Positions 27,705 to 59,542 of a stretch of 64,000 nucleotides of DNA are shown piece after piece. Made by a program: the position numbers and the translations under genes. The DNA is from Macrostomum lignano (Eukaryota): assembly GCA_002269645.1 (NCBI GenBank), contig NIVC01001389.1, positions 62,001 through 126,000 on the forward strand. The letters are read 5' to 3'. How positions within the stretch are numbered: position 1 is the first letter of the stretch; every line of letters begins with the position of its first letter. The notes below the pieces were generated by a model that saw nothing but the letters and a program-made list of their open reading frames with translations, did no database searches and was not told the DNA's origin.

Positions 27705-28225
27705 GCTCTGTGGAGTGACAGCTGGACGCAGTCTAGAGTTTCTAGTCTAGAATGTTTAATTTTTATTTGTTCATTATGCAGACCTATTATTAATATACAA
27801 ATATTAATTGGCCTGCAATTGTCTTTTTTCAAACCTTTACTCCGAGTATTGTGCGTCCTTTGCTGCTCTGTCAGTATTTGAAATATTTAACTCAATTGTA
27901 ACTCAATGCGGTTGCTTAGCTGTGGTATTAATTATTACTACAGTATAATATATGTATGCATAATACTGCAGCTTGTGCGCCATAACTCATTGCCTGTCTG
28001 TCTAGTCAAAATTTTGTCCTTTTTAAATTATCACCCAGAGAGAATTTAATGAATTATTAATGCGAGTCTGATGTCTTCTGCAGCTGTCCAGTTCCGGTCT
28101 GCTCGAGGTTGAAAAAGTCCACTGAAAAGTACGGGTGCTGACTGACTGGGCAGTTGAAACATCATGTTAATTGCGTAATGTGATATTGACTTCTCATTTT
28201 GCTTTTTTTGTCAGATTTTTGTCAG

Positions 28226-30348: not shown

Positions 30349-30461
30349 AACCGAGAGTCATTGACAGCTGCCACCCCGCATTGCAGAGGCTGCACCCCAG
30401 CGCTGCCAGTCGCTCTGCAATTCCCAATTCCCCATTAGCTGTCAATCTCAGCTCAGCTGAC

Positions 30462-31258
30462 ATGTCCAGCCTGGAGTCGCTGCTCCTGGAGGCCCGCCAG
30501 CTGGCCGGCCGGCTGCAGTCCCGGGAGGAGGCCGCGGACTCGCTGATCGGCAAGGCGGAGGCGCTGAAGAAGCGCATGGAGGGCCAGCGCCAGTACCAGG
30601 AGGACGTGTGCCAGCTGTCCGAGCTGGCGGCCTGCAAGCGGCCCCGCGCGCGCCTGCTGGTGTCCATCGCAGCCGAGAACAAGCGGGTGAAGGAGCTCGA
30701 GGCCGAGAATGCCGAACTGCGGCTGTCGCTTGAGGAGCATCAGACCTTCATGGAGGTGCTCATGAACAAGTACAGGGAGCAGATGAGGCGCAGCGAGGAG
30801 GTCGACCTGGCGGCCAGGCAGCAGCCGGCGCTTGCGGCCAGCAGGGAGTCCACGGCGACTCTGGCGCTGCAGGTAGGGATTTGAGCTCGCGAGTTTGGGA
30901 TTTCGAGTTCCAGTTCGAATTGTATTTAAATATAAATTTTACTCCAAGCCAATCCCACTTGACACGCGCGCAGGAGAAGGTGCAGGAGATGGCCTGCGTG
31001 ATGCGCGAGGCCCTGCGCCGCGAGGACGATCACGTCACCCAGCTGGAGGAGGACCTGACCCGGCTGCGGACGGAGAACGCCACCCTGCGCGAGCTGCTGC
31101 GCATCGCCACTGCCGCCGCGGCAGCCGCTTCCGGCTGCGCTTCCCGCTCCGGGTCAACCAGCGGAGCCGCAGCCGGCGCCTCGGTGGGCGGTCAGAGCCA
31201 CAGTCGGGCGTCCAGTCGAGTCGGCATCGGGTCGCCTTCGTCGGGCGATTCGGCCTGA
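30462..31258 (+). CDS. FGFR1OP2: FGFR1 oncogene partner 2 / SIKE family coiled-coil protein (STRIPAK component)
   Basis: Exon 30462-30872 (LLLEARQLAGRL..RQYQEDV..RPRARL..ENKRVKELEAENAELRLSLEEHQ..MNKYREQM) and exon 30974-31258 (VQEMACVMREAL..LRTENATLRELL). Confidence 0.93.
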
Positions 31259-32991
31259 GGTCGCGGGTTCGAGTCGGTGTCTACTTGACGTCAGTTTCAG
31301 GGTTAACTACAAATTTGACACTTCTGTGACGCTTCAGTGTTAATCGTAAATGTAATATTAGCTGAAGAATTCCTGGTTGAATGCACACGGACTGACGGGT
31401 TTGCTGTGGCGCTGTCAGCTGTGATACTCGAGGTCAGCCCTGTCTCTCTGAACTGCATGCAGAAGAACTGTGAAAATTATTAACTTGCGCCTGTTGCACA
31501 TTTGTACCTTATTTGACCTTTGCAAAATTGAGTTCAAATTGAGTTTCTCCCGCAAAAGCAGATCGTACAGTCGCATGATGCCAGTTTTGCTCGGCTGCTT
31601 TTGTGTCTGTTTTGTTCGAACAAATCCGAGCGGACTGCATTACTGTACTGATGCGCATGCGAGCGCTTTCTGTCTTCATTTAATCGCTTATAGTAATTAG
31701 GTCTAAGTTCGCATGCTCTACACCTTTGTATAGCAGCTGTGAGCGAGTCTGCATGTCCATCTGCTTGTATCGGAATCTTTGCTAAAGTGTAAGCTATGCT
31801 ATTAAAATAAACAACTTGTCTGTAATATATAATATCAATGTTTAACCGTTTTTTGAAGGCACGTTACTTTAAGTTCTTGTATATTCAAATCTTCAAATGC
31901 ATCATATATTACACCATTTCACCTCCTATTTTGAACAGTCTTATTCAAAAGAAACAAGCAGAACTTCAATTCAAATGCTTTAAGAAATAACAGCCCTTTC
32001 GGAAATTCAATTCAAACAAAGTGCCTTTCTATTGAAACAGACGAACTTCAATTCCGACTGTCTGTGGCCAAATCTGTCCCCGAGTGACGCGCATGCGCAA
32101 ACTTGAAACTCAAAAGAAACAAAGTCACATTCTATTTCGACAGAGACTCACGAGATAAAAACACAACAAATCGACTAACACAAGAGTAAAATGAAAAACA
32201 GGAACAAGACATTGTCAGTTGGCCACACCTAACCATCAATTGCCTGTCCACCAAGGCAGCGAGAGACGTATGTAAACACATGGTTGAACCACTCAGTGCA
32301 CTTGTCCGCAGAGATGCAGCCTGATCTGATCTGCAATCTGATCTTCAGCATTCATCTCGTTTCTTGTTGCGCAACGATTGTACAGTTATGCAGTGCAGTA
32401 AAAACAAAAAAATAGATTAATGTAATAAAAATGTATCTATAGATGCGCAAAAATCACTGGAAGATTTGGATCTTAGTCTTCTAATGTTGGAAGATTAAGA
32501 GATGAGATGATCCTGTTGAGATGATATCATAGTTTTTGCGATTCTTTGCGGATAATACAGCTTCAATTAATGAGATTTCTGTGTCCTGAAAGTAAAGGTA
32601 CCATAGATACATGGGATTATGAAGCACATAATGTGCTCGACACGAATGAGCTGGAATCAAAATCCTCACCATTCCAGTTCTGTGGGCTGCTCGATGGAGA
32701 GAGCAGGCAATTAGGGTGCATCCGCACTCTAACAGCTTTGCAGCTCCGCGCCACCAACATGCGGAACGGCGCCCGCCTTCCCCACTTGGCAAATTTTGCT
32801 GCTCATCCGCAGCACAGGGCGTCGGAGAGGCTGAGGTGGCTGCAGTCTGAGCTGATGGCTTGGACAACAGCTGGTTGCTAGGGGCGATTGAGCTCAACAA
32901 CGGGAGCAGTGATAAATTTTACTGCATGCAGGATTTCTGCCGACTGCCTCATCCCGAGCCCTCGCATCCGCAATACCGCACTGCAGCCAGC

Positions 32992-33750
32992 ATGGCAACC
33001 AGCTTCATCGCTACTCCAGTCTCCGTTCTGCTCGCAGCGGCCTGCCTGGCCCAGCTAGTCCACTGCGAGAGCCTGTCGGCACCGCCTGAGCAGCCCGCAG
33101 TGCCTGGCTGAGAATCTGACAGTGCGGACGGCCCAGACTCCGAGAGGATCATCACGAGTGCCTCATGGAGGCTGGCTCGAGCGGCCTGCAGGTGGCCCAG
33201 TTCGACTCGGACACTCGCCAGTGCTCGCTCTTCCAGTACATCGCAGTGTGCCACCTCATCGAAGGACTCGCTGCTGCAGAGAGCTCGCAGCCCCGCCGCT
33301 GTGCCGCATTCGCCAATGACAGAGCCGCCAAGTTCCCCACCTTGAGCAGGAAGCTCATGCTGGGTGTGGGCTCGAAGCTGATGGCCGCCTGGATGATGAG
33401 CGACGATGTGGACGCCAGCAGGAGCAACTTGGTGTGCGGCCAGACGCAGCAGTGGATGTCAGAGAATGTGGAGTGGAGCAGCGAGGGAGCCAAGCTCGAC
33501 GGAGTGTCGTCCAAGATGTGGCTGGAGAACGTGGAGCTCGCGAACCTGCAGCAGGGACTCTGTGGCTCGTCAGGCTCAAGCGGGAGATCAAGCACGAAGC
33601 AATTCTTTGCAGCTACGACGGCACCACCGAGAAGAATGGAGTCGTCTTCTGGGAGCATCCACCTTCAAGTGGCCATACTTTCACAGAGTCGTTTCGAGCC
33701 AAACCCCACCGGAAACGAGCTCGTTTGACCCGAATTTGTTCGTGGAAGTC
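32992..33750 (+). pseudogene. Frameshifted secreted protein, PAN/apple-like plus LamG/ConA-like segments
   Basis: Signal peptide MATSFIATPVSVLLAAACLAQLVHC, then HECLMEAG..AQFDSDTRQCSLF (PAN-like) and LDGVSSKMWLE..TLWLVRLK..ILCSYDG (LamG-like), spread over three frames with no evident splice sites between them. The domain calls are tentative. Confidence 0.4.
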
Positions 33751-33926
33751 GGCATCTCTTTTTTCTCCATTTTTTTTTCTCCAACATTTTTCTCCAACGG
33801 AGGCTTTGAGCCCTCTGGGCAGGTGACTGTGGGAGGCCCATATCCTGAATCGAGCTTTCCCAACTGCACCTGCCTGTTACTCGGATTTCAACCTAACAAC
33901 TCGCGAATGCTGAGGGCACGGTGCCC

Positions 33927-34412
33927 TGCACGGTCAAAGACGCGTACCCGCTGCCGCACATGCAGCAAGCATGAATTGCTTTGGTCGGGTGCTCCTGGTT
34001 TTCCACCATCGACTGTCGGCAGGGCTACCACCAGGTGGAGTTGGCGGAAGAGGACCGGTTTAAAACTGTCTTCTATTCGACCTGCGGCCTGACGCAGTTC
34101 CGCAAGACGGGCTTTGGAATTCTCAATGCCCCAGCAACGTTCCAGCGGCTGATGGAGCTGGTGATGCCCGGTCTGTCCTGGGACTCCGCGCTGACTTACA
34201 TCGACGACATCATTGTCTTCAACAGGACCTCTGACGAGCATCTGGTGAGACTTGAGCGCGTTTTTTAACGGCTGCAAGATGCGGGTCTCATGCAAACTGC
34301 ACAATGCGAAGAGCGTGTTCGGCCATCGCCGGGTGCTGTACCTGGGACACCTGATCAGCGAGCAGGGTATTGCACCGGACCCCAGCAAGGTTGAGGTCAT
34401 TCGCAGCATCCC
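33927..34412 (+). mobile_element. Ty3/gypsy LTR retrotransposon reverse transcriptase fragment (degraded)
   Basis: TVKDAYPLP*..WFSTIDCRQGYHQV..DRFKTVF..FGILNAPATFQRLME..TYIDDIIVF..EHLVRLERVF*..YLGHLISEQGIAPDPSKVEVI, with stops and a frameshift. Confidence 0.92.
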
Positions 34413-35719
34413 TAGTGCTTTCCCTTTGTTCTTTTTCCATTGTTACCCCCCCCCCCCGAATTCGTGTGGCTCGGTTTCAGAGTAATTACAGAGCAGCTTT
34501 CAGAGTATAATGACAAGAAAAATTTTATTCTTTATTCAGTTATTCGAGGCTAATTTTTAAACGACGCAGCAGAAGCGGCTACAAGCTTAACTGAATATAG
34601 CGATTATGCTTGTGCAGAAACCCTAGACATTTCAATAAGGCGTTTGCTATGTTAAATTCTCTAGAAAAAAGGGGGGTCCTGTACAAGAAAGCTCAACGCT
34701 CCTCTCAAAATAAAGATCGAAAAAAAACTAAGTAGTGCATCTTGTAGAGGGGTAAATTCTGTACAGGATGGCCAAGAAACCAGATTTCTACGTTAAATTA
34801 TAAATTCTAGGGAGCAACTAGAAAAAAACCAGCTTTCTACGTTCAATTATAAATTCTAGGGAGCACTAGAAAACACCAAGCCTCCAACTACTTTCTGCAT
34901 GATATGGCCAGTTTCCCGTCCCTAGTTTAAGTAGTCCCTGAGTGTAGCACAACCAAAGGCCCTAAGCAAACCAAAATTGCAACAAATCAACGCAGATGTA
35001 ACAAAGCCACGTAATAAAATACGGTTAAACCATGAACATGATAAAACAAAGCTTAAAATCAATAAAGATGACTAGACTTGTTTCTATTAATAATAATAGG
35101 TCTATGTTTAAATTAAATGTAAGTTATAAAAAAATTCACGGTCACGCACGGTTTCACGCACGGTGTAGTTCCAATCACGCACGAAAAAAATTACGGTCGG
35201 TCGATCCTTATATAACGCTCCAAGATTACAAACTAGTTGAAACTACGTAGTTTGTATCGCGAAATTATTCGCTTGTTTATTCTAGTGGCCCTAGGCCAAA
35301 ATCAAAATCAAAATCATTTATTGGCCCTAGGCGGCGCTAGGCCTACGCATACTCACTATTTTATACATCTATGGCATAATTATCAAAAGCGCATTGCCAT
35401 TATTGGCATTTTTGCAGAATTTCTAAATTGAATTTTACTTTTTATGACTTACTACTTTCGTAGTTTCTATTATTAAATTTAATTAGTAAAATATTTTTTT
35501 TAATATGAATTTTATTTTATAATAAATTGTATTTATTTTAAAAGAATACAATATTTTAGGTTCAATATTTAATAAATTTAAATTTTAGTTCTTTTAATTA
35601 AATTTAAATAAGATGGCCTATGCCAATGCCATGCCAATAGGCCTAATAGCTAATTTAAGTTAGGCCTAGTAGCTAATTTATTAAAATGATCTACTTCTAT
35701 ACTGGTAGTGGCAGCATAT

Positions 35720-36582
35720 CAGTGTTGGGCACCGTTAATGAAAATCTTAACTTCTGTTAATAGCAAAAGCGTTAGCATTAAAACAAAAAATCTTAACTTT
35801 TTAACTCCTAATTTCGTTAAGTTAACTGAAAGTTAACTGATAATCGTTAATAAGCGTTAATCCGTTAAAGTTAACACAGAAAATACGGAAATCTTGCACG
35901 TTTTTTCCAAAACAGACTTCGTATTGAACGTCTTTGCTATTCCATCTTTTTAGCGAAACACAGAGGTCATCAAAGCAATTTGAAAGCTAAAAGAGTAATA
36001 AATAATCATTTTAAAAACTTGCATGCATAATACTACTAAAAGTAAAGCATATGGTAAAAAAAGTAACTTATTTTATTTGAAACTTAAAAGCTAATAGCGA
36101 GAAATTCATAATTAAATACGCATAGGAAGGTTGTTTCAGTAACCATTAGCAGGCGCAGCAGAAAGTTTCGAAAGATAGGGACAGAAGTGAATCAAAGCGA
36201 TCGATGCTCACGCGCAAGAAATGAAGTTTCACACTATTTTAATTCATTATTTTAAAGTTTATTTGTAAGAAGTTGTTAATTACAACTTAAGTCTGTATGA
36301 TCATCGTCATAAATAAAGAGATTATATTTAGGCATATAGGTAGCTCAAATACGTTCGTAATGTTTAAACTTCTTGTAAGACTTCTATTTTTCGTTCCTTC
36401 TTTGCGTCTTTGGTCATTGACATAGACACTACCATTAACGATGAATTTATCGTTAATTCACAAAATTTTTAACGCAAATTCGTTAATCCGTTAGTTCAAA
36501 AAATCTTAACGACAGTCCGTTAACGTTAATGAAAAATCTTAACGCTTATTAACGCTTATTAACGGACTGGTGCCCAACACTG
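35720..36582. mobile_element. Non-autonomous hAT-type DNA transposon (MITE), 863 bp
   Basis: 14-bp TIRs CAGTGTTGGGCACC / GGTGCCCAACACTG; perfect 8-bp TSD CAGCATAT (35712-35719 and 36583-36590); many subterminal GTTAA/TTAAC motifs; no ORF. Confidence 0.92.
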
Positions 36583-39542
36583 CAGCATATCTAGCCTAGG
36601 CCTAATTTCTAGCCTAAGTAATGCCAACTAATGATGGCATTTTCTATCCTTCTCCTTTATCCTTTAAGGGAATCTTTCTCTCAGTCTTGGGTAGGCCTAT
36701 TGGCTGGTTAAATTAAAACCAGCCGATATTCTATTCTTGTTTTCTATTTATTTTTGCATGCCTCATTTGCTTTTCATGTTTCTAGAGTATAAAGGCTGTT
36801 TTGTTGTTCTTGATTACTTGAGCAAGTAGTGAGTTGGCAAGTTGATTTTCTTGGCCCTTTTAGCCTTCTATCTATACTATTAAAATGTGATAATAACAAA
36901 TATTATTTGTTAAATATTTTTACAATTTATTATAGCTAGGCCTAACCAAAATAGAAAAATGTTTTATATAAATCTAAATGAAGTTTTTCTAAGAAATAGG
37001 CCCTATTATAAGAAGTTAACCCATAATATAGAAGGTGGGCTTTATACAAAAAAATTCTGGCATATTTTTGCTCTTGCTGACAATCTTGGTATACACTTGG
37101 CGTATAGAATTTTCAGGTTCAATATGAAGTATACATAGTTAGCATATATAAAAATGGCAATGTCAGGGCTAATGTAATTGTGTTATTAAATTTCAACCAA
37201 AAAAGCTCTTTAAAAACTAATTAGAAACTATAATAAAAAATATTAACAAAATTTATAAGAAAAACAAAATTGAAACAAAGAATATCTGTTTTTAGCAAAA
37301 TACTGCCATGGTATATGTTCTGTCATAGAACACCTTCTACTTGTCTTCCCTGCAACTAAAACTGTTACAGTGGTCTTTTACTGTTCACTGGGAATCACCA
37401 AAACTGTTACAGGGGTTTTTTACTATTCACTGGGAATCACCAAAACTATACTAAGGGTTGGAAAATTAAATCGGGACTGGGGGATTTGGGAGGAATTGTT
37501 TGGAATAGCCTATTGAAAGGAGTATTCCTGGAGCATGGGTGTGTTCAAGTGGCAAGACACAATTTCCTTCTCAATCTGGGAAATATAGATGGGAGAAGGG
37601 AATTAAAGGCTTTGCAGTAGATCAGAGTTGCCTAGGAAAGTGCACTAATGGGGAATTTCTAAACACTAATAGGGAATGCTGGCTCAAGTAGACTGACCAT
37701 CTAATATAGAATATGGTAAGAAGGCAATCCACCTAATGAATATGGGAGATTTCTACTAGGAAGGGTCAAGAGCGGGGATGTTAGGGCAGACTATACATCT
37801 GAGGGAATAAGGCTGTACACCTGAGCAGACAGACTGTCCACTAAAAGGGGGGAGGGGCAAAAGAGGTGGGCACCAGTTCTGCTGGGAAAGGGGGGAGGCA
37901 ATCACTCGGGGTAGGACTGAACATCCCAGGGAGTGGGGAATGGGGGGAAAGGAAGTGTTGAACACTTCTAGCTATACAAGCCTCACAAGAGAGGGAAGGC
38001 GGAGTGCCTTTAAATGACTAAGACAAGTCTATTTTTAGAACAATGTTTGGGTACAACCACAAAGAAAAGCCTTAATTATAGCCAGGCTGGCGAAGGAGGG
38101 AATATTCTCCTTCTCAATTTATTCTCTCGCTTATATATAAAACATAATCAATATGGCGTACGCATTTAAACTAATAAAAACGCTAGATTATATTGTAGGC
38201 TGCTAATCAATACTAAAATTTACTATTAATGGTATAAAATATTTATTTATGCAGGCACAGAGATGTTTTTAGCAATTTAGAAAAATAGTCATATTTAGTG
38301 TACGTAAAAATGATAGGCAAAATAGTGTCTCTTACAGTTCTTTAAAAAAATGGTATACAAGCAACTCTGGGCTTAGTGTAATTTTTTTTAATTTTACATT
38401 GAAAGAGATGAGAGAGCAAAGACAAGAGAGAAGAGAGGTTGGGAAGAGACAAGAAAAAAGGGGAGAAAGAAGAGAAGAGAGATGATAGGGGAGACAAAAG
38501 ATAAGAGAAAAAAAAGGAAACAGAAGAGAAGATAGAAGTTTCGAAAGATCTAAGAAACATAAGAGAGGCAGAGGTCAAAGTTTTCCAATACATGTTTTAG
38601 ATAGACATTGCCTGATATTCTATGCAGCAGCCAACAAGATCAATGCTTGCAAGTTTTAATGTTTAATGTTTTTAATGTTTAGTGTTTAATTAATGTTTTT
38701 CAAACATTAGTGTTAGTGTAAAATTAAAAACACATGAGTTTTCATTCTGGTATATGCCTGCCATGATCTGGACTATGGAAGTAAACAAATATTTATGAAG
38801 TCTACTACTATATTAATATAATAAAAAAGCTAATTATTATTGTAAAAAGATATTGCCTTATTATTCATTTCAATCTTTATCATAAAGTCATAGCCTCATA
38901 CTCATAGGTAAATTATGGCATAGACATTAGACATAGACAAATAGACATTATTACTAAACATAATAATTTAGTTAAAATGGGAATGTAACTTATCTTACAT
39001 CTAACAAATAAAAAAAAGAAATACCAGTAGAAGTATATATAGCCCCCCCTATTAAAATTTTATTTGTTGCCAATGCATTTTGTTTATCATAGACATTGTC
39101 AGTCTCAATTCAATCCAAATGATATTAACACACCAGTATATTTAAGAAAACAAGTTTTAGGCCTATTTATAGCCCAAAAACAGGTCAAAACAGTTTTAAA
39201 ACAAGTATAAATATAAAATTGAAGGAGAGAATGAATAGACATGGCACTGATCATAGTAATCTGAGCTTATGCTCTATTTAGATGAGTCTACATGCAATGA
39301 TCAGCAAGTGTAGGGGCTAATGGACACCCTATAGCAATGCCATCAATTTGGCAATAGCATAGCATTCGTGCAGCACTAGTAGACTACTTTAAATAGAGCA
39401 CTGCAGCTTATTTCAACCTTCAACTGCAGCCACGGCAGTCGGCAAAATGCCTTCACCTCCATCTGGTGTTTCGCTGCTCTTCTCAACCTCGCAGCCCGCG
39501 GCCTCCCTGCCAATGTCCCCGGAGGTGGCGGCGGCCGCTGCC

Positions 39543-40937
39543 ATGGCAATCGGCATGCGCGCATCGGCGGCTGCCCTGCAGTTGCTGCTGCTGCTGCTCG
39601 CAGCTGACCTGGCGTCCCGCTGGTCCCAGCAGGTGGCCGCCGCCTCGGCTGCTCCCTCCGGCCTCGGCCGGGACTACATGCTGCGCACCTGCGGCCAGAC
39701 CCTGTCTCTAGAGGGCCTCGACTGGGCCAGCGTCACCTGGGAGCCGCCGGTCAGCCAGTGCGGCCTCACCGTCCTGCCCGGAGCCGCCCGCCGCGTGCTA
39801 GCCTGGCGGCGAACCCTGGGCCACCCCAGCCCCGCCTCCGCCTGCTACATCGACCTGTACCGGTGGCTGTGCCTGCCCAAGCAGCCGCACTGCAACACCC
39901 TCGTGGTGGCCACCGGCAGGCACGAGAGCGGCGCCCTGCTGGAGCCGCCGCCAGCCAGCAATCCAGCAGGCCTGTCGCTGGGCGAGACTGACTTTCTGCA
40001 GGTGGTGACAGGCTTGGCTGTGTGTCCCTGTTTTTAGTGCCCTGGGAGATTTGAGAGAGTGGAAAACAGTTAATAAGACCCAATCTGCGTTGTAAGGGAA
40101 CGCTTTGTTATTGGGTCTTTGTCTTTGTCTCCAAGTTTCCAATTGAATTAAGACGCATTTTGTCCATCCTAGTGGACACAAAGCTTCCAATTAAGACACA
40201 TTTTGTCCATCCTAGTGGATACAAAGCTTCCAATTAAGACACATTTTGTCCATCCTAGTGGACACAAAGCCCCCCCCCCGCACCACCCGAACCCGCAGCT
40301 GCTGTACTGTGGCACCGGCGGCACCGTGCTGTACCTGCAGCTGGACAGCCAGAAAGACTCTGGCAACCCGACCGACACCGCCGGCTCCAGCAGCAACTCT
40401 GTACTGCTCGGCGTCATCCTGCCCACTCTCCTAGTTGCCATGGCAACTGCCACGGCCGTTGTCTTCATCGGAGTCTGCGCCAGGCGGCGCCGATTGAAAC
40501 GGCGCCAAATTCGGCGCCGCCATCGCTCGGAGCCGCCGCCAAGCTACGCGGACTGCGTGACGGCCAGCGCCGCCGCTGCCCAGCCAGAGCAGTGGAAGCT
40601 GGGCTCCAGGCTCTCGGCCGAGCAGCTTCATCGCTCCTGGCTTCAACAGCAGCCGCCGCCCCCGCCTTACGAGCTCGCCGTGGCCACCATCAGCCTCGGC
40701 CGCATGGCCATTGTCGAGTCCTCAGATTATCCCTGCTCGTTGGAGCACCAGGAGTCCCAGGACGCTAGCAACCGTTGCCATGACAACCCGGCGTTCGACG
40801 CCGGCGATGGCGACCAGCTGGGCGAGTCGGACAGCGTCAGGATGGCGGTGGGTCGCGGCATGCGTGCTCAGTATTCCAGGAATTCCAGGAGCATCTCGCA
40901 GGGACCGCAGCGCGGCTGCCGGGTCACCCAGGTCTGA
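39543..40937 (+). CDS. Type I membrane protein with CUB-like ectodomain, two PY motifs and a C-terminal PDZ-binding motif
   Basis: Exon 39543-40001 (signal LQLLLLLLAA; TCGQTL..SQCGLTV) and exon 40299-40937 (TM VLLGVILPTLLVAMATATAVVFIGVC, basic stop-transfer, PPPSY, PPPPPY, DNPAF, ends VTQV*). Phase 0 junction. Confidence 0.8.
40130..40268. repeat. About 3 copies of a ~43-bp intronic repeat (GACACATTTTGTCCATCCTAGTGGACACAAAGCTTCCAATTAA)
   Basis: Direct inspection. Confidence 0.85.
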
Positions 40938-43179
40938 GCAGGAGGCTTCGAATCATGGACCCTTGGAATCTGCCTGGACTGGACTGGGGGCTTTCTGTAA
41001 TGAATTTAGAAATATCATGACATGGTTCCGGGGTTCGATTCCGCTCGCTTTTGCACCCTGTCTGAGTGCGTCCTAGGTTCGATTCTGCAAGCTTTTGGAC
41101 CCTGTCTGAGTGCGTCCTAGGTTCGATTCCACTAGCTTTTGGACCCTGTTTGAGTGCGTCCCAGGTTCAATTCGGCGTGGTTTCCTTGCCCTTCCGCTTT
41201 GCTTGTATTTCGGCTCCCTTCCCAGTCCAGTCCAGGGAAGCTCTCCAGAGGTCCGCGATTCCAATTGGTTTATTTGATTAACAGTGTAAAACAGATGTAG
41301 CTAGCTATTTTTTGTCTATAAGTAGAGTATTGCGCGTTTTCTGTTTTTTCGCTCTTGATATTTAGCAGATTCATCAGTATGGATTAAACGGTTTCACTGA
41401 CCTTGTCAACAGCTCTCGCGAGTCTCGTTTTTTGTTATTGATTTTCAATCAGACAGCGCTGTCATTATAAATACAATTTAATAATAAACGCGTTGCATTT
41501 TCAAGTCTATTACAGTTTCACTCGGCACCTGTTGTAACTGCCTCATCAAACAGCCTGCGGTGTTTTCGAGATTTTGTTGCTTAATTCAACAGAAGCTCGA
41601 GTGCTGCGCCTTTCCTTCGCTCCCGGTCTCAGCTGGTTGTCGGTTTCCTGAGCTTTCAAAGATAATGAAAGACGCCTGAAAGAGGTGCCAAGAACCGATT
41701 TGGATCGCTCTGCTTCGATGCTTTTATCGATTAATCAGATTAGTTTGAGTCGCAACTCCTTGGCTTTCGGTTTGTTTCCGAGACACCTGGTCCCAATTGC
41801 AGACAGAATTGTGGCCTCACTGCCTTGTCCTGTTAGTGGCAATGTGAATCTGCCACTTGTCTGCATAGAGAATCTGCCACTAATACTCAGCAACAGTCAA
41901 AAGGTTCCACCCACTAAGCGAGATGATTTTTTCACTTATCGCGAGTGACGCAACTTACGGCACGCGCAAAGCTTATTGCCGCTTGGAGGTGGTTTGGGTC
42001 TGCTTAATGGTCCAGGATGACAACGTGCCGCCACACCAAACCGATGCTGTTAGTCAACCGAAAGAACAGCTACAGCTGCGCACTCTTTCATCTCGTTTTC
42101 ATCTCGCTTGGAGGGTGGAAATTTTGACTGTTGCTGATTATATTTACTTTGGGAATCTGGCACTTATCTACCTCGGGGAATCTGCCACCTAGCCACTTGG
42201 AATGGTTCCATAAGAAACGCCAGTTGTCATGGCACAGCAAAAAGTGCAGACATTTTTAGCGTCCTAATCTATTTCATCCCGGATGGATCTTACGCGTCTG
42301 TCTGGAGCTCTGACATCTCTCATGCTTATTAATCAACCAACAAGCGCCATTTTATCACGCAGAAGTTAGCTAAAACAATGCTGCATGTGCATGTGGCTAA
42401 TACGGTTGGTTGGGCCTTGGCCAAGCGAGTATGCAGTCGCTCCATGATCAGATCTGAGTGCCCAACCCCACCCCCATGGGACCAGCCGTTCTGAAACGTG
42501 AGGGCGAAGTAGATTAGAGAGAGAAAAGCTGCACTCAAAGAAAAGCTGTGAGGTCGGAGCTCCTCTCGCATCGACCGGCTAAGGAAGCCCCAAAACTATG
42601 AGATGCGGCAATGGTCTCGCGAGCTTTCGACGCGCAGTTATCCGGGCATTTTCTGTCTTTTTATCCCTGCATGAGTCCATCGGGCTGCTAATGAGTGACA
42701 GTGGAAGTTGGAGCAATTAGCAGGGCTACTAAATAATTCCTTTGATAACGTTTAAAAGACAAGAGCAGGTTTGACTTTGGTAGTCTGCAGCAATCAGTGC
42801 CGAACGCAAGGTCTTTGAGAAAGTAATCGAACGTTATTGGAAATGCCTAAACTTGATTGCTTTGCATCCACGAGCTCACTTAGTTCAAAAAATAATTAAA
42901 GACAAACTCGAGCTGTTCGATAGTGTGGATTCGCAGAGCCTCGGGTTGGCAAAATTTTGACCATCGAGGCGTGAAGGTGAGCCGAAACTGACCTGCGCAA
43001 CTTGTTTCACATGGCTTAGCAGTTGGGGGGGGGGGGCTATTTAGGTTGCAATGTGACAGACAGTTTCATTTTTTTCCAATTTTGCTTGAACTTTCGGTAC
43101 TTTGCTCTTAGTTACATCGACCGGTGCTGCGCAACCAGCTCGGACAGACTGGAGCCGTCGGAGGCGTCCGGCAAACTCT

Positions 43180-43677
43180 TTATCTTGAACGCTTGCCGAA
43201 CATTTCGCCGTTGAACCGCTTGCCGAACATTCCTCCATTAAAGCGTTTGCCGAACATTCCACCGTTGAACCGCTTGCCGAACATTCCTCCATTGAACCGC
43301 TTGCCGAACATTCCGCCGTTGAACCGCTTGCCGAACATTCCGCCGTTGAATCGCTTGCCGAACATTCCGCCGTTGAACCGCTTGCCGAACATTCCGCCGT
43401 TGAACCGCTTGCCGAACATTCCGCCGTTGAACCGCTTGCCGAACATTCCGCCGTTGAACCGCTTGCCGAACATTCCGCCGTTGAACCGCTTGCCGAACAT
43501 TCCGCCGTTGAACCGCTTCTCTTGGAGCCCACCATGCTCTTGGCTGTGCGAAGCCTCTCCGTCTACGGCGGCCTTGACCTCTTGCTGACCTCTGCAGCTG
43601 CCGCACGAGGCGAGCGCAGCAACGAGCAGCGCGCACAGCAGGCACTCGCTGCTGAAAACCACTCTGCACAGCCGCAT
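43180..43677 (-). CDS. Neuropeptide precursor: 11x FNGGMFamide plus 1x FNGEMFamide
   Basis: Signal peptide MRLCRVVFSSECLLCALLVAALASCGSCRG, acidic spacer, KR, then 12 x 27-nt units FNG(G/E)MF-G-KR (43189-43512), then SR*. Unit differences are almost all synonymous third-position changes. Confidence 0.9.
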   Translation of the reverse strand: MRLCRVVFSSECLLCALLVAALASCGSCRGQQEVKAAVDGEASHSQEHGGLQEKRFNGGMFGKRFNGGMFGKRFNGGMFGKRFNGGMFGKRFNGGMFGKRFNGGMFGKRFNGGMFGKRFNGGMFGKRFNGGMFGKRFNGGMFGKRFNGGMFGKRFNGEMFGKRSR

Positions 43678-45049
43678 CAGGTCTTCACTTCGCAGTGGAA
43701 AATTGGACGAAGTGCTGATGGTTGTCGGTTGGCCTCTGCTCAAATCGATTTTGAGAAATTGCGATAGAAGCGCAAAATTTCTATAGCAGCCGATGCTTTT
43801 TGTCTGCACGGATCTGTGACAGGAGAGCATCAGTAGTTGGTGCGCGCAGGCCTCTCCTGGAGACCAAGTGACTGGGCATTGGCGGTCGCGGTTCTGGCGA
43901 ATCGCGGCGCTGATGGGGCTCAGAGGCTGTGCCTATGTCTTGGCTTGGTTAATAACCGGATTAATGCTCTAATGCATATTTAATCCTTATTATATGAAGT
44001 GGCTTCAGTTTGTCGGTGTGTTTTGGTTGCATGTATGAATTGAAAAAAGGTGACACTGAAGCCACTACAAGTACGGTTTTGATGCGAGACTAACTACTCG
44101 CAAGCTTATAAGTTCGCGAATGCATTACGAAGATGTCGTACAGACTGGGATGCATGAACTGTGCACTAGCACATGAGAAACTGTAACACTAAGCAGCAGG
44201 CTGCCTGACTTACTGCTGCTGTCCTGAATCTTGGGCTAGGCCCTTATCTTTGAAGTTGAAAACAAAGAACACCTGCTTGCACCATGGGAGGAGTTCCCAC
44301 TCGGCAAAGGGAATAAAGGTGTAGCTCACCTGTGTTGCCAGGAGACGACCTGACTCTTGAATTTAGCTTTTGCAGTCCTAAAGTTTCAGTTACAAAAGCA
44401 GAGAGAATTCAAAGCTTCTCCCAGTTCCTTTCTTTTTTCCAAGGCAGACTCGCGAGCCCGCAGGCTTTGACCAGGAGAAGCCTGCAGGCGGGGAAAGCAT
44501 GTAGCCACTTGCCTTGCCTTTGGCCTATTATACAGTGAGCCGCTGTCACTCTGGAAAGCGCAACAATTTGCAGCAGTATGCTCGCGTGCACCGGCAGACT
44601 GCGGCCCAGATTATGCCTATCGCAGGGTTCAATAGTTGCTCAACTTCACGGAGCTTTTCTGAAGTTCCCAACTCGAGGTCTAAAGATACTTTTGTGTGCA
44701 TGAGAGACCAATAGATAGACACAAGCGCAGTGATGAGAAAGATATAGAGTGGGAGAAATAAAGATAATTGAGAGTTTAGGATTGAAAGGGAGAGCTCTGC
44801 TATAAACTCAGCGTCAGCGGCAATAAGTTCAATATCGCAATTCCCCCACGCACGGACAAAGTCAACACAAAATACAGGCTGAAACTGGCGCTAAGGCCAC
44901 GGTATACCATGCTTGACTTACTTTGACTTCAAGCTGCATGGCAGGAAGGCGTGGGCGCCCCGATCCGCTTATCCCTAAACGGCCGACGCGTCGCTATAGA
45001 CGGAGGGTTGACGCCGCCCAATGGGGTCTCCAGCGCCACGGTAACATAA

Positions 45050-47364: not shown

Positions 47365-48683
47365 TCAGGCGATCACTTTCCCCCGCCGCAGCTCCAGCAG
47401 CTCCTCGCAGCCGCAGTCCAGCAGCTCGCCGAGCACCTCGTCAGTGTGCTCACCCAGCCTGGGCGGCGGCCGCGTCACTTCACCGCGCCGGCCGTCAAAA
47501 CGGACAGCGGGACCCGGAGCGGTGACCCGGCCGGCCGCCGGGTGCTCGCAGGTGACCAGCAGGCCGCTGGCCGGATCTGCCACCGGCGGGCTGGCCAGGG
47601 CCTCCGCCACGGTGTTCACCGGGCCGTACGGCAGGTCGGAGCCCTCCAGCGCCGCCAGCCAATCCGCCAGCGGCCGGGCGCGCACCAGGGCCTGAATTAG
47701 CGGGATCAGGCTCGTCCGGTTAGCAACCCGCAGCCGGTTGCTAAGGAAGCGAGGATCCGTTGCTAGGTGGGGAGCGCCGAGCCGGCGGCAGAGGACGCCG
47801 AATTGGCGGTCGTTGCCGGCGCCCAGGATGAGTTGGCGGCGGTCGCTGGTGTCAAAGGCCTGGTAGGGCGCGAGGTTGGCGTGCCCTGTGCCCCAGCGGC
47901 TCGGCTCCTGGCCTTCGAGGGTCGGTGGGTTCTGTGACGGACAGACAGACAGACTGACTGACAGACAGACAGACAGACTCTGAGCCCCTCACCGGTGTGC
48001 AGGAAGCTGGCAGCCACATGCGACATGGTGGCCACCTGGGTGTCCAGCAGGTTGGCGTCGATCCAGCAGCCCCGGCCGACCTCCCCCAGACTCTCGGCCG
48101 TCCGCCGCCGGTACAGGGCGGCCAGGATGGCGGACAGGGCATACAGGCCGGTGGACAGGTCCGTGACGGCCACCCCGGCCCGGACGGGCGGACCGTCGGG
48201 CTCCCCGGTGATGCCGAGGAAGCCGCCGATGGCAGCCGCGGCGACGTCGTAGCCGGCCCGCCGGCGCCACGGCCCGGACTGGCCGAAGCCGGAGATGCTG
48301 CAGTAGATGAGGCCGGGATTCTAGGCGCTCAGCGAGGCAAAGTCCAGCCCGCGCTTCGCCAGCTTGCCGGGCACGAAGTTCTCCAGCAGGACGTCGCAGC
48401 GCCGGGACAGCCGGCGGACCAGGTCGGCCCCGGCCGGCTGGCCGAAGTCCAGGCAGACACTGCGCTTGTTGCGGTTGACACTCAGGAAGTACACGGAGTC
48501 CTCGGCCGCGAACGGCGGCCCCCACTGCCGGGTCTCGTCCCCGCCGCCCGGCCGCTCCACCTTGATAACATCTGCGCCCATATCGCCCAGGATCATTGAG
48601 CAGTAGGGCCCGGCAAGCACCCGGGTGAGGTCCAGGACTCGAATCCCGGCTAGGGGCCGGTGGGCACTGATGGGGACTGGCGG
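47365..48683 (-). CDS. SUGCT: CoA-transferase family III (CaiB/BaiF; succinyl-CoA:glutarate CoA-transferase-like) with an in-frame TAG; start exon not certain
   Basis: Exon 48683-47993 (PLAGIRVLDLTRVLAGPYCSMILGDMGADVIKVERPGGGDETRQWGPP..NRNKRS..DVLLENFVPG..LSA*NPGLIYCSISGFGQSGP..GYD) and exon 47912-47365 (GHANLAPYQAF..PYGPVNTV..PPPRLGEHTDEVL). TAG at 48321-48323. Confidence 0.9.
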
Positions 48684-48719
48684 CTGTGGGAATCAGAATC
48701 GTGACGAATAGAAGCAAGG

Positions 48720-49512: not shown

Positions 49513-50037
49513 TCAGCTTCTTGACGACCGGGACGCCTTCGACTTGGCGCCCTCGGCCAGCCGGTCCAGGCGCTCCCTGCCGGAGTCCTTGGCGGCGATG
49601 TTGCCTGGCGGAGCCACAAAGTAGTGCTCCTCGGTCTCGGCCGCGTTGCTCAGCACGGCCGTTCTGGGCTGCTCCGCCGGGGTGTCCGCGCGCAAAGGGC
49701 ATCGCCAGCCCCAGGCCTCCGGCAGAGAGGTCATCGGTTCGACCTCAGGACCAGCGTGCACCAGGCGAAGCTCGTCAGCGAACCGGACAGCCTCAGCCAC
49801 CACTCGGACAGTGTCCGCGGTGTCAAACTGGACGAGGGACAGCCGCTCGAGCAGGGCGATCGTGTCCGAGTCGATGGCGGTGGGCGGGGGAAGCTCGGAG
49901 TCCGCAACGTTGCGCCACGTAGGAGCGTCGGGCACCAGACGGTGGCGGCAGCGGCGGCCGGCGGGCGGGGAGTCAGCGGCGCCGCATGAGCTGCTCGAGC
50001 TGCTGCAGAGATGCCGGGGAAGCCGTTGCCAGGGCCG
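49513..50037 (-). CDS. GATC: Glutamyl-tRNA(Gln) amidotransferase subunit C, mitochondrial; start unresolved
   Basis: IALLERLSLVQF..VAEAVRFADEL..VEPMTSL..LRAD..VLSNAAETEEHYFVAPPGNI matches eukaryotic GatC. The N-terminus is R/S/L-rich like a presequence, but there is no upstream in-frame ATG. Confidence 0.85.
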   Translation of the reverse strand, partial: RPWQRLPRHLCSSSSSSCGAADSPPAGRRCRHRLVPDAPTWRNVADSELPPPTAIDSDTIALLERLSLVQFDTADTVRVVAEAVRFADELRLVHAGPEVEPMTSLPEAWGWRCPLRADTPAEQPRTAVLSNAAETEEHYFVAPPGNIAAKDSGRERLDRLAEGAKSKASRSSRS

Positions 50038-50087
50038 CTGCGGCCCTAGCAACAACAGTGCACGTGGCAGTGCACGCAGCAGAAGGA

Positions 50088-50483: not shown

Positions 50484-52601
50484 CAGTTGCGAGAAAAGTT
50501 AGTGAACCCTGACTGAACTTTTAGAACAATCGCAAGTCAATTTTTACCGGCGTTTATTCAAAGAAACAAAAGTTTTAGCAACTAGTTCTGCTCATGTTCA
50601 GCAAAAACTATTGCGTAGTTTGAGCGCAAACTAACCGAAACGAAAAACCAATTTCGAAAAAGATAGTGAACCGCAAAGTTTGGATTGGTCAAACCACAAT
50701 GCATGATGCTTTTTCGAAACCTTTCACGCGAAAACTGTTGCACCAACTGCAATTTAAATGCATTTGCCCAAAGCTGTAAGCCTCAGAGGCTTGCTGCACT
50801 TGTTGTATCATCTCACAACACTGGCCTCGGATACAAGAAGAATTGCCAACCAACTTCGGCTCAGTGCTTCCACTGCTAGAGCTGTCATTCACAAATGGCA
50901 GAAGCGCAACACTGTGACTCCACTGCCTCGGAAGTGGACGGACGACCTGCCAAAGTTTCTGAGCGCACAGCAAGGAGAGCTCAGCCTGTCGACAGTGATC
51001 CAACCGTGACTGCAAGTCAATTGCAGCATCAGCTGATCAATGCAGAATAGAGGTGCACAAGTCAACGGTGCAGGAGTCTTTGAACCGTCAAGGACTTCAC
51101 AGACGAGTTGCTCGCAAGAGACAAAAATTCAAGAGTTGTTTGGGTGGGTACATTTCGCAGAGACGGCTGGCATTAAAACAAAATAATGCATTGCCTACTA
51201 CAAAGTATAGAGGTAGCAGAATCATGCTGTAGGGCTGTAAGTGCTGCAAGTGGAACTGGAAATAATGTCCAACTTCATGAAATTATGAACTCGGTCATGT
51301 GTTAGAATTGAATGAGTTGGAGAGGTTCTGGGTGAGTTGGAGAGGTTCTGGGTGAGTTGGAGAGGTTCTGGGTGAGTTGGAGAGGTTCTGGGTGAGTTGG
51401 AGAGGTTCTGGGTGAGTTGGAGAGGTTCTGGGTGAGTTGGAGAGGTTCTGGGTGAGTTGGAGAGGTTCTGGGTGAGTTGGAGAGGTTCTGGGTGAGTTGG
51501 AGAGGTTCTGGGTGAGTTGGAGAGGTTCTGAATGAGTTGGAGAGGTTCTGGGTGAGTTGGAGAGGTTCTGAATGAGTTGGAGAGGTTCTGAATGAGTTGG
51601 AGAGGTTCTGAATGAGTTGGAGAGGTCATGGATGAGTTGGAGAGGTTCTGGGTGAGTTGGAGAGGTTCTGAATGAGTTGTGAAGAGGTTCTGGGTGATTT
51701 GGAGAGGTCATAGATGAGTTGGAGAGGTTCTGAATGAGTTGGAGAGGTCATGGATGAGTTGGAGAGGTTCTGGGTGAGTTGGAGAGGTTTTGAATGAGTT
51801 GGAGATGTTCTGGGTGATTTGGAGAGGTCATAGATGAGTTGGAGAGGTTCTGAATGAGTTGGAGAGGTTCTGGGTGATTTGGAGAGGTCATAGATGAGTT
51901 GGAGAGGTTCTGAATGAGTTGGAGAGGTTCTGAATGAGTTGGAGAGGTTCTGGGTGAGTTGGAGAGGTTCTGGGTGAGTTGGAGATGTTCTGGGTGAGTT
52001 GGAGAGGTCATGGATGAGTTGGAGAGGTTCTGGGTGAGTTGGAGAGGTTCTGAATGAGTTGGAGAGGTTCTGGGTGAGTTGGAGAGGTCATGGATGAGTT
52101 GGAGAGGTTCTGGGTGAGTTGGAGAGGTCATGGATGAGTTGGAGAGGTTCTGAATGAGTTGGAGAGGTTCTGGGTGAGTTGGAGAGGTCATGGATGAGTT
52201 GGAGAGGTTCTGAATGAGTTGGAGAGGTTCTGGGTGAGTTGGAGAGGTCATGGATGAGTTGGAGAGGTTCTGAATGAGTTGGAGAGGTTCTGCACTGTAG
52301 AATGGGAAAGATTCCTGGAGAGCAGTGCTGTAAATTGATTAACAGTCACAAAAATGTATTGCAGGCTGTTATTGCTGCTATGGATGGAGTTACGAGTACA
52401 AAGCATTAGTTGCTGGAATTTCAAATAAGTTCACTAACTTTTTCAACAGCTGTTTTGTTTTGTGGCCAATTGTGTCCAAACTATGCAATATTTTTTACAG
52501 AAAAGTTACGTAATCACTCACCTCACTAATCACTCCTTAAGAATAATTCACTGGTGCTGATAGAAATTCATTTAGGGTTCACTAAATTGTTCTAATCACT
52601 G
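50484..52601 (+). mobile_element. Tc1/mariner relic (IR/DR type), catalytic core deleted
   Basis: Imperfect TIRs CAGT..TTAGTGAACCCT / AGGGTTCACTAA..ACTG with inner repeats at about 50665 and 52431. HTH fragment RRIANQLRLSASTARAVIHKWQ; LPTTKYRGSRIML*GC segment at about 51190; C-terminal FCTVEW-KIPGEQCCKLINSHKNVLQAVIAA. No TA TSD seen. Confidence 0.82.
51311..52292. repeat. 20-bp satellite (GAGTTGGAGAGGTTCTG[GGT/AAT]) inside the Tc1 relic
   Basis: About 49 units with three main variants. Confidence 0.97.
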
Positions 52602-53766: not shown

Positions 53767-56700
53767 TCAGATGCCGGCCAGCAGGTCAGCCAGCTCGGCA
53801 GGCTCGGTCACGGGCAGCTGGCAGGTGAAATCCCGGCACAGGTAGGCGGCTGCCCGGCCATCAATCGGGCCGTAGCCGCTGCACCATCCAGCATCCTGCG
53901 GCCTCATCAGCGTCAGGTCCGGCCGGCGCACGGGACCGTCCGAGGACCAGGCGGCCTGCAGCAGCGGCTCCAGCTGGTCCTCGGCCGGGGCGGCCAGCAC
54001 CAGGGTGGCCGGTGGCCCGGCCGCGGTCAGCAGGCAGGCGGAGGCCATCTCGGTCAGGGCCATGGGCTGCCGGCCCAGGGTCTGGCTGAACCTGTTCAAC
54101 AGCTCGCCGCCGCGGCTGCTGTAGCTGCCGCTGTTGTCGTCTAAGGCGCGCAGACTGGCCAGGTTGACGGCCGACACGGAGTTGCCGCACGGCTCGGCGC
54201 CGTCGTGATCGTCGAGGAGGCGCAGCGGCAGCTCGGGGGCAGCGGCGTTGGCGGCGTCGCCCGCATCAGCTGACTGGCGCCTGCGGGGGCGGTTCGAGTC
54301 TTGACTTTTGGTTCTTGGGGAGGCTGCTGAGTCTTGGTTCTTGGGGAGGCTGCTGAGTCTTGGTTCTTGGGGAGGCTGCTGAGTCTTGGTTCTTGGGGAG
54401 GCTGCTGAGTCTTGGTTCTTGGGGAGGCTGCTGAGTCTTGGTTCTTGGGGAGGCTGTTTGAGTCTTATTTGGAACGTGAAGCTGACATCCCTAAGGTGTC
54501 ACCTGGTGTCAAAGTAGGCCTTGGCCTCCGAGCACCAGAAAGCCGCATCCTGCTCAGCCTGCAGCTGGCGCGCCCAAGCCAGGTAGGGCTGGTGCAGGGT
54601 CGCCCGGTACAGCTGCAGCAGGGCGCCGATGAGCTGGGCGTGATCGTCAAGGAATGCCTTCACGGGCGCCGGGCCCAGGGTGACGCCGTCCTGGCCGTCC
54701 GGATAGGCCACTCGGTACAGGGTGCGCGTGTCCTCGCGCCACAGATGGCACCGAATGAACTCTGCTCCGCGACGGGCGTGCTCGAGCCAGTCGGGACGGT
54801 TCAACAGACGGCCGGCCTGGGCCAGCGCCGAGATCATCATGGAGTTCCAGCAGGTGAGCAGCTGGAGCAGGTGGGATTATCTTCGGTAAAACGAGCTAGT
54901 CCGTTGCTATGTTGTTGCTAGGGGATATCGACTCGTTGCTAAGGGACGCATGCACGTTGTTAAGGGACGCCTGTACGTTGCTAAGGGACGCCTGTACGTT
55001 GCTAGGGACACCTATACGTTGCTAGGGATATCTATACGTTGCTAAAGGACACGTATACGTTGCTAAGGGACGCTATACGTAGCTAAAGGACACCTATACG
55101 TTGCTAAGGGACACCTATACGTTGCTAAGGCACACCTATACGTTGCTAATGAACACCTAAGCGTTGCTAACACTATACGCTGCTGTCGACAATATGATGT
55201 GAAGAGGCTCCCCTGTTGACCAACAGCTCTAAAACCCCCCACCTTGTCGTCCAGATGCGGCGGCGGTCGCTTCGCTCGAACCTCGCGCAGCCGGAGCAGG
55301 CAGTCGGTGATGCCTGCCCGCAGCTGCTGCTCTGACAGGCCGAGCTGCTGGGCCAGCTCCCGCCAGGCCTTGCGCCGGATCAGCACGTTCTGGCCGCGCA
55401 GCTCGTCGTGCGGGTCCTGGTATGGGTCCACGTTGCCCGCCTCGGCGCAAGAGTACACCGCGGCAAATGCCTGCGGGCCGGAGTGACGGGCAGAAGCTGG
55501 GAATGAAGGGGATCTGGGAGCTGGGTGGCGGTCTTGCAACTGAGGATCTGAAAGACTGGCCCAGCAACTGAGGGTCTGGAAGGCTGGCCCAGCAACTGAG
55601 GATCTGGGAGGCTGGCCTACTAGCAACTGTGGATCTGAAAGACTGGCCCAGCAACTGAGGGTCTGAAAGGCTGGCCCAGCAACTGAGGATCTGGGAGGCT
55701 GGCTTAGCAACTGAGGATCTGGGAGGCTGGCTTAGCAACTGAGGATCTGGATCTTCCCGCTCACCTTCAAATAGGGCACGTCGCCAATTGAGCCGCCCTC
55801 CAGCGCGGCGGCCAGCTGTCCCCAGGTCCACACGCAGAAGGCGCCCTCCTTCTTGCCGTGCCCGTGGCCGCCAGCGGCATCCTCAGCCGAGCCCTCCGGC
55901 AGCGAGTCGGCGTCCTGGGCGCTGTAGAAGCCGCCGGCCGGGTGTGACAGCTCCCGACAGACGTACTCCACAATGCCCACGGCCGTGTCTGCGAGCTCCT
56001 TGGCCGTCCCGGCGTCCTCCTTGGCGCAGAGACGCGAGGTGACAGCGAAGGTGGAGCACAGCTGGGCCTGGTCGTACAGCATCTTCTCAAAGTGCGGCAC
56101 GTGCCACTTGGCGTCCGTGGAGTAGCGGTGGAAGCCGCCGTTGACGTGGTCGTGGATGCCGCCGCGGGCCATGCAGTCTAGCGTGAGGCGGCACATCGCC
56201 AGGGCCTCGGCGGACTCGGCCGGGTCGGCGGCGGACCGCAGGCCGGCCAGGCGCAGCAGGAAGGCCAGCAGCGACGGCTGCGGGAATTTGGGGGCCCGGC
56301 CGAAGCCGCCCAGCTCCGAGTCGAACCGGTCGCGCAGCTGGCGGAGGCAGAGGGCGGCCGGCCGGCTCGGGTCGAAGGCGGCCGCGGACGGCGGCGCTGG
56401 CGGCACCGCGTGTTTGCGGAGGGCGGCCAGAATCTCCGTGCCCTGCGTCTCCACCTGGGGTGGGTTAGAGGAGACAGAGGTTTGAACACTTTGAAAGCGT
56501 CTGAGCACACTGATCTCTTCCAATAAGCGTCTGAGCACACTGATCTCTTCCAATAAGCGCCTGAGCACACTGATCTCTTCCAATAAGCGTCTGAGCACAC
56601 TGATCTCTTTCAATAAGCGCCTGAGCACACTGATCTCTTCCAATAAGCGCCTGAGCACACTGATCTCTTCCAATAAGCGTCTGAGCACACTGATCTCTTC

Positions 56701-58654: not shown

Positions 58655-58794
58655 CCTGCGAGCTGCTGTTGTGGCTGCTGCTGCTCTGAAGAGCTCGAAA
58701 CTCAACAGGAATGCGGGATTGGAGCTTTGATGAAGAAGGCGTAATACGGTATCCACCAGCACAAGCCTTATGTTGCTATGGAGCTCTGAGACAC

Positions 58795-59542
58795 TGTTCA
58801 AGTCAAATTACCCCGTTGCTATGGAGCTTTAAGATAGTGTTTAAATCAAATTACCCCGTTGCTATGGAGCTTTAAGATAGTGTTCAAGTCAAATTACCCC
58901 GTTGCTATGGAGCTTTAAGATAGTGTTCAAGTCAAATTACCCCGTTGCTATGGAGCTTTAAGATAGTGTCAAATTACCCCGTTGCTATGGAGCTTTAAGA
59001 TAGTGTTTAAATCAAATTACCCCGTTGCTATGGAGCTCTAAGATAGTGTTCAAGTCAAATTACCCCGTTGCTATGGAGCTTTAAGATAGTGTTCAAGTCA
59101 AATTACCCCGTTGCTATGGAGCTTTAAGATAGTGTTCAAGTCAAATTACCCCGTTGCTATGGAGCTTTAAGATAGTGTTCAAGTCAAATTACCCCGTTGC
59201 TATGGAGCTTTAAGATAGTGTCAAATTACCCCGTTGCTATGGAGCTTTAAGATAGTGTTCAAGTCAAATTACCCCGTTGCTATGGAGCTTTAAGATAGTG
59301 TTTAAATCAAATTACCCCGTTGCTATGGAGCTTTAAGATAGTGTTTAAATCAAATTACCCCGTTGCTATGGAGCTTTAAGATAGTGTTTAAATCAAATTA
59401 CCCCGTTGCTATGGAGCTTTAAGATTGTGTTCAAGTCAAATTACCCCGTTGCTATGGCGCTTTAAGATAGTGTTAAATTACCCCGTTGCTATGGAGCTTT
59501 AAGATAGTGTTCAAGTCAAATTACCCCGTTGCTATGGAGCTA
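58795..59542. repeat. 43-bp minisatellite (CAAGTCAAATTACCCCGTTGCTATGGAGCTTTAAGATAGTGTT) upstream of SPATA20
   Basis: About 17 copies. Confidence 0.97.

Follow-up and report, generated by a model that had tools for sequence, protein, structure and literature searches.

We identified a gene on the minus strand of a 64-kb window of the Macrostomum lignano genome (the window is the whole stretch of 64,000 nucleotides that was analyzed) which very probably represents a genuine amidated-peptide prohormone gene (43180-43677). Taken as a whole, it is best read, with reasonable probability, as a prohormone of the SIFamide/NLP-10 type whose peptide is reduced to a minimal hexapeptide and unusually amplified. 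The open reading frame was a single exon of 165 codons plus a stop codon, running from an ATG at 43675-43677 to a TAA at 43182-43180, and an earlier note on this DNA had delimited this multi-copy frame exactly. It encoded MRLCRVVFSSECLLCALLVAALASCGSCRGQQEVKAAVDGEASHSQEHGGLQE, followed by 11 x KRFNGGMFG, one KRFNGEMFG and a terminal KRSR, so that the twelve hexapeptides previously counted (FNGGMF x11 and FNGEMF x1) were recovered by translation.

The precursor had the organization of a prohormone, as had been proposed: an N-terminus that is signal peptide-like by heuristic measures, an acidic spacer, dibasic sites and a Gly amide donor (coordinates that follow are on the minus strand). Residues 1-23 (MRLCRVVFSSECLLCALLVAALA, 43609..43677) form a predicted signal peptide with a basic n-region (MRLCR), an 11-residue hydrophobic core (CLLCALLVAAL) whose Kyte-Doolittle mean was 3.05 versus 3.07 in the paralog described below, and small residues at positions -3 and -1 (Ala-x-Ala); a Ser-Ser-Glu stretch breaks the start of the h-region. 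By this purely heuristic call (n-region charge, Kyte-Doolittle values and -3/-1 residues), the N-terminus is probably signal peptide-like and would be cut after Ala23, behind Ala-Leu-Ala. Residues 24-53 (SCGSCRGQQEVKAAVDGEASHSQEHGGLQE, 43519..43608) made up the acidic N-terminal spacer, a propeptide segment of 30 residues that contained five acidic and two basic residues and ended at the first Lys-Arg. The 12 units of 27 bp that followed (43195..43518, delimited by TRF and translation) each consisted of Lys-Arg, FNGGMF (FNGEMF in unit 12) and Gly, with no spacers between the copies. The closing Lys-Arg of the last peptide, Ser-Arg and the TAA completed the coding sequence (43180..43194). Lys-Arg was present both before and after all 12 copies, and each copy terminated in Gly-Lys-Arg, which offers Gly as amide donor.

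An in-frame upstream ATG at 43830 would prepend 51 residues that had no signal-peptide character. We favored the ATG at 43677 because, in an ungapped alignment, Met1 of the paralog fell on residue 7 of the 165-aa form. A TATA-like sequence, TATAGAAA, was also observed at 43778-43785 (minus strand), approximately 100 nt 5' of the ATG at 43677 and 3' of the one at 43830; if this is the promoter, the ATG at 43830 would lie outside the transcript. No canonical AATAAA was seen within 250 nt 3' of the stop codon.

The gene at 43180-43677 is missing from the annotations reached here. A Pfam scan of the precursor returned no family, exact-product look-ups with the 165-aa and 216-aa ORFs found no protein or gene record for either, and no protein with the N-terminus of this precursor, or one similar to it, was present among 5.8 billion proteins. 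The best database match was an M. lignano "hypothetical protein", BOX15_Mlig004279g2 (PAA64743), and two near-identical entries, g1 (PAA90071) and g4 (PAA89184), were also found; all three are 114-aa models that misrepresent a paralogous gene. The exact product of the window gene is on no record, but the identical unit was already in GenBank within unnamed M. lignano proteins.

With regard to peptide family, the C-terminal motif of SIFamide/NLP-10 peptides, F-[N/S]-G-[S/G]-[I/M]-[F/Y]-NH2, was present in FNGGMF-G. Counted from the amidated end, FNGGMF was identical to Diploscapter peptides at 6/6 positions, to C. elegans NLP-10-1 at 5/6 and to two arthropod SIFamides at 4/6 each. The Diploscapter pachys proteins WR25_23522 and WR25_00747 (P0280 and P0281) combined a signal peptide with four peptides, and three of these ended in PFNGGMF-G (AKMLPFNGGMF-G, (S)PRVIPFNGGMF-G and SSMPFNGGMF-G, each flanked by dibasic sites). 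Besides M. lignano, the combination of this unit with Gly-dibasic grammar was found only in the cluster that held these two proteins. The Diploscapter proteins and the metagenomic sequences P0007 and P0282 are unnamed nematode NLP-10-like precursors, in which a Phe-amide occupies the place of the Tyr-amide of C. elegans.

In C. elegans, NLP-10-1, -2 and -3 are AIPFNGGMY, STMPFSGGMY and AAIPFSGGMY, respectively. NLP-10, renamed SIFP-1, is the proven cognate ligand of NPR-35/SIFR-1, the Gq-coupled nematode orthologue of NPFF/SIFamide receptors, and the NLP-10/NPR-35 pair accelerates locomotion. These nematode precursors resemble the flatworm gene in the amidated F-N/S-G-G-M-Y/F end, in their multiple copies and in their Gly-Lys-Arg sites; they differ in that the peptides have 9-11 residues, carry x-[I/M/L]-Pro before the Phe and occur as four spaced copies. 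Receptor and function of nematode NLP-10 have been shown by experiment; those of the flatworm peptide are predictions. Arthropod SIFamides, such as TYKKPPFNGSIF-NH2 and GYRKPPFNGSIF-NH2 (TYKKPPFNGSIFa and GYRKPPFNGSIFamide), likewise end in F-N-G-x-(I/M)-F-NH2 followed by Gly-Lys-Arg, but they are dodecapeptides with a basic, Pro-Pro-containing N-terminal half, in contrast to the 12 bare hexapeptides observed here. The arthropod peptide is said to follow the signal peptide immediately, and the Rhodnius precursor of 74 residues contains one SIFamide. SIFamide/NPFF-type receptors have been reported in flatworms. In addition, Attachin, judged by the titles of the reports (Preza et al. 2022, J Neurochem 162:467; Koziol et al. 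2016, Int J Parasitol 46:709), is likewise a flatworm peptide of the SIFamide family, a cestode homologue that stimulates motility and attachment.

Since its sequence matches the SIFamide/NLP-10 peptides of nematodes and arthropods, FNGGMF does not appear to define a new peptide family. The earlier note had suggested an undescribed flatworm family, which is disfavored by the identity of the hexapeptide to the C-terminus of nematode NLP-10-like peptides and by the F-N-G-x-hydrophobic-F-NH2 pattern that it has in common with SIFamide. Two features that define SIFamide precursors were absent, however. The Pro or Pro-Pro with an N-terminal extension before F-N-G was lacking in all 12 units, and the usual precursor layout (one copy after the signal peptide, or a few spaced copies) was replaced by 12 spacer-less copies behind a 30-residue spacer. 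Because Lys-Arg sits directly before Phe in every unit, the mature peptide would be the bare hexapeptide. Given these two absences, we describe the peptide as SIFamide/NLP-10-like in its active end rather than as a proven member, and the sequence comparison inclines us, by a modest degree, to place FNGGMF-NH2 with the SIFamide/NLP-10 type and not in another or a private family. A more specific proposal, about which we are slightly more doubtful than confident, treats the FNGGMFamide genes as macrostomid orthologues of SIFamide/NLP-10/Attachin whose peptide was stripped to the C-terminal hexapeptide and amplified to 12-31 spacer-less copies at no fewer than two diverged loci.

Six compared residues are few, and convergence is therefore conceivable: FNGGMF-NH2 could be a lineage-specific Macrostomum peptide that came to resemble SIFamide/NLP-10 by convergence, acting on an unrelated receptor or outside the nervous system, perhaps as a product of glands or secretory cells. 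The missing N-terminal extension and Pro and a precursor architecture unlike that of any SIFamide precursor would fit such an origin; among the inspected matches of an exhaustive HMMER search (233 matches), the KR-FNGGMF-G unit was found in the paralog only, and most flatworm neuropeptides are reportedly without similarity to those of other phyla. We nevertheless consider convergence unlikely, as the peptide agrees completely with the Diploscapter C-termini, departs from NLP-10-1 by a single conservative Y/F change and lies in the same Gly-Lys-Arg context, and as receptors of such short peptides generally recognize the C-terminal amidated end.

The HMMER matches were otherwise nearly all unrelated repeat proteins or multi-copy precursors (PxFVamide-like and KRFMHGL-type). 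A set of metagenomic proteins (P0002-P0006, P0009, P0144 and P0211) was small and secreted-looking, with a MFRRFLFLGVGALALLVVLAAPGQVHAQ-like signal peptide and (P/S)RFNGGMF(T/D/E) repeats. These RFNGGMF(T/D)PR-type proteins were considered as relatives and rejected because they were devoid of Gly-dibasic grammar; they probably belong to an unrelated, possibly bacterial, repeat family. In the literature we found nothing relevant on the peptide or its core, the peptide tables of McVeigh 2009, Koziol 2016 and Preza 2022 being outside the comparison, and the main text of the planarian survey of Collins 2010 contained no buccalin or GGM-type peptide.

The affinity first proposed for this gene was with molluscan buccalin and allatostatin-A (AstA), which would imply a galanin/AstA-type receptor. 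The likeness lies in the multi-copy amidated precursor and in the F-x-G-G-hydrophobic core, which resembles buccalin FXGGI-G, and an orthologue of the AstA/buccalin receptor is present in the flatworm Schistosoma mansoni (PMC9114394). However, buccalins end in F-x-G-G-[I/L]-NH2 (PMC9114394) and AstA peptides in [Y/F]-x-F-G-[L/I]-NH2, that is, buccalins stop at the hydrophobic residue, whereas FNGGMF has Met for Leu/Ile and runs one residue further to an amidated Phe, so that its C-terminus does not line up with F-x-G-G-[LI]-NH2. The catalogued buccalin-like gene of M. lignano, npp-9 (GAYSGFLG), encodes another peptide (PMC9114394). Moreover, the nematode peptides ending in FNGGM plus an aromatic residue act on the SIFamide/NPFF-type NPR-35, while the AstA/galanin-type NPR-9 is still an orphan. 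An assignment to buccalin/allatostatin-A is thus quite improbable, and the SIFamide/NLP-10 reading was retained.

The window was crowded with minisatellites (approximately 32 arrays), which made it necessary to ask whether the array could be open by chance. TRF described it as 12.4 copies of a 27-bp period with 94% matches and zero indels (43185-43518). Openness of the ORF is by itself no evidence, since none of the three minus-strand frames of the array was closed by a stop and one or more plus-strand frames were open as well; nor is a period divisible by 3 special, as 12 of the approximately 32 arrays had one, a share expected by chance. In the antisense ORF (PNIPPLNRL repeats), neither an ATG start nor processing sites were present. 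Codon variants across the units included GGC/GGA/GGT, TTC/TTT, AAC/AAT, CGG/CGA/CGC and AAG/AAA, with CGT in the final Lys-Arg, and every variant that had been listed from inspection was found among them.

Simply counting substitutions relative to the consensus proved unsuitable as a test: a control array at 26499-27286 scored P=1.4e-5 in a stop-filled frame, since a variant inherited by several units enters such a count repeatedly. In its place, each distinct unit variant was counted once and classified as synonymous or non-synonymous in each frame. In the FNGGMF frame, 7 of the 8 distinct variants were synonymous and one was not (P=1.2e-4 for an expected synonymous share of 0.21), whereas five in-register control minisatellites of the window gave best-frame P values of at least 0.02, two of the three lowest values falling in stop-containing frames. 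The peptide frame of the array is under purifying selection, and the earlier impression of almost exclusively synonymous differences between units, unlike those of the minisatellites, withstood this count.

Within the units, the second Gly was encoded by GGA, a codon that is rare in neighboring exons (7% of Gly codons), in 11 of the 12 window units (GAA in unit 12) and in almost every unit of the two paralog arrays, every other position having the preferred codon. This pattern may have arisen through common descent or gene conversion of the unit, or because a long G/C run is avoided. Codon bias in the neighboring exons was strong (AAG 95%, TTC 81% and GGC 80%) and could underlie part, or even most, of the codons shared by the window gene and the paralog.

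The paralog was represented by an array of 31 FNGGMFGKR units at locus L001 (10148-10982, NIVC01001722.1) and one of 28 units at locus L002 (10148-10902, NIVC01000162.1), both read in the same frame as the window array and located behind another signal peptide. The KR-FNGGMF-G unit was identical, and the unit consensus, TTC AAC GGT GGA ATG TTC GGC AAG CGG, differed from that of the window solely in the third position of the codon for the first Gly, a synonymous change. As in the window gene, a predicted signal peptide and a spacer of about 50 residues preceded the array in a single exon. Differences included the number of units (28-31 versus 12), the C-terminal tail (FDGNMHPSFLDYITQNPTQD versus SR-stop) and the signal peptide and spacer sequences themselves, whose ungapped alignment with those of the window gene was weak. 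Two paralog units were FNGVMF (GGGGTA). The frame of the paralog arrays was broken by one-base deletions in G-runs, in the units at 10526 and 10741 of L001 and at 10526 of L002. The 114-aa model displayed five units only, an artificial intron bridging most of the array; the GenBank models BOX15_Mlig004279g1, g2 and g4 are artefacts.

No similarity of flanking DNA between the paralog loci and the window was detected by blastn, tblastx or word-7 blastn, which returned the array or unrelated minisatellites only. The paralog loci are unlinked to the window gene, and the peptide-coding array alone is conserved. That two old, unlinked genes kept the same peptide array while their flanks diverged is the strongest internal argument that selection acts on the peptide itself. 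A non-coding minisatellite open by chance, or a dead, unexpressed duplicate of the Mlig004279 array, is therefore very improbable. Such readings could draw on the many minisatellites of the window, a third of them with periods divisible by 3, on the several open frames of the array, on the lack of any recorded gene model or transcript-derived protein for 43180-43677 and on codon bias, which could explain part of the identity with the paralog. Against them, the ORF is intact and free of frameshifts, its in-frame signal peptide-like start is placed as in the paralog, its distinct variants are unlike those of the control arrays, and retention of the same peptide between flanks diverged beyond recognition would be unexpected for a decaying copy.

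If the precursor is processed as its sites predict, the signal peptide would direct it into the secretory route, a PC2-type convertase would cleave after each Lys-Arg, a carboxypeptidase would trim the basic residues and peptidylglycine alpha-amidating monooxygenase would convert the exposed Gly into a C-terminal amide. Each precursor would thus yield 11 FNGGMF-NH2 and one FNGEMF-NH2; the computed [M+H]+ is 671.297 for FNGGMF-NH2 and 743.318 for FNGEMF-NH2, the latter peptide being specific to the window locus. A PC2 homologue exists in M. lignano, and its knock-down by RNAi gives a phenotype. FNGGMF-NH2, presumably expressed in neurons, would most likely be a neuromodulator acting via a SIFamide/NPFF-type GPCR, an orthologue of NPR-35/SIFR-1 and of the arthropod SIFaR, and it might plausibly stimulate locomotion, attachment or feeding.

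The neuropeptide catalogue of M. lignano, to our knowledge the only flatworm model in which transgenesis is routine, was built largely on old EST searches. The gene described here is of an ordinary kind and does not represent a new type of system, yet it is a striking case of copy-number amplification of a minimal peptide. Reading FNGGMF-NH2 as SIFamide/NLP-10-type names a specific receptor class for testing, and it would tie a free-living flatworm to cestode Attachin, which is reported to stimulate parasite motility and attachment, as well as to NLP-10/NPR-35 of C. elegans, whose locomotion circuit is well mapped. If the genes are indeed the macrostomid orthologues, F-N-G-G-M-aromatic-amide, which flatworm and nematode share letter for letter, would be near the ancestral protostome SIFamide, the hexapeptide alone would be the receptor pharmacophore, and a transgenic flatworm model would gain a tractable SIFamide system.

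The flatworm origin presumed for this DNA was substantiated by its surroundings. A SIKE/FGFR1OP2 exon (30381-30884, plus strand) was 100% identical to M. lignano BOX15_Mlig010401g3, and approximately 19 kb of the window (21692-41230) aligned to NIVC01003500.1 at 97-99%, with repeat arrays varying in length; this alignment stopped 2 kb before the peptide gene. As this identity is below 100%, the window would be another assembly, haplotype or homeologous copy of a polyploid genome. Additional genes on the plus strand included a proline-rich single-pass membrane protein (39447-40937, a 394-aa GenBank model). On the minus strand, a C3HC4 RING-finger protein (5387-6298), a CoA-transferase family III protein (47763-48717), GatC (49513-50055) and a SPATA20/DUF255 thioredoxin-like protein (53767-58801) were detected; protein matches to the SPATA20 exon were at 49% only. 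A possible reverse transcriptase-like ORF (21537-22076, minus strand), suggested by reading of the translation and giving no Pfam match, was located in an AT-rich block at 14-24 kb (GC 35-41%). Rfam and tRNA scans of the 64-kb window were empty. The density of minisatellites was extreme, with examples at 28221-30349 (19 bp x 108), 15118-16400 (19 bp x 67), 56501-57508 (29 bp x 34) and 51312-52292 (20 bp x 49). Several of the arrays were located within the SPATA20-like gene, either in its exons or between them, and many yielded long spurious ORFs in several frames.
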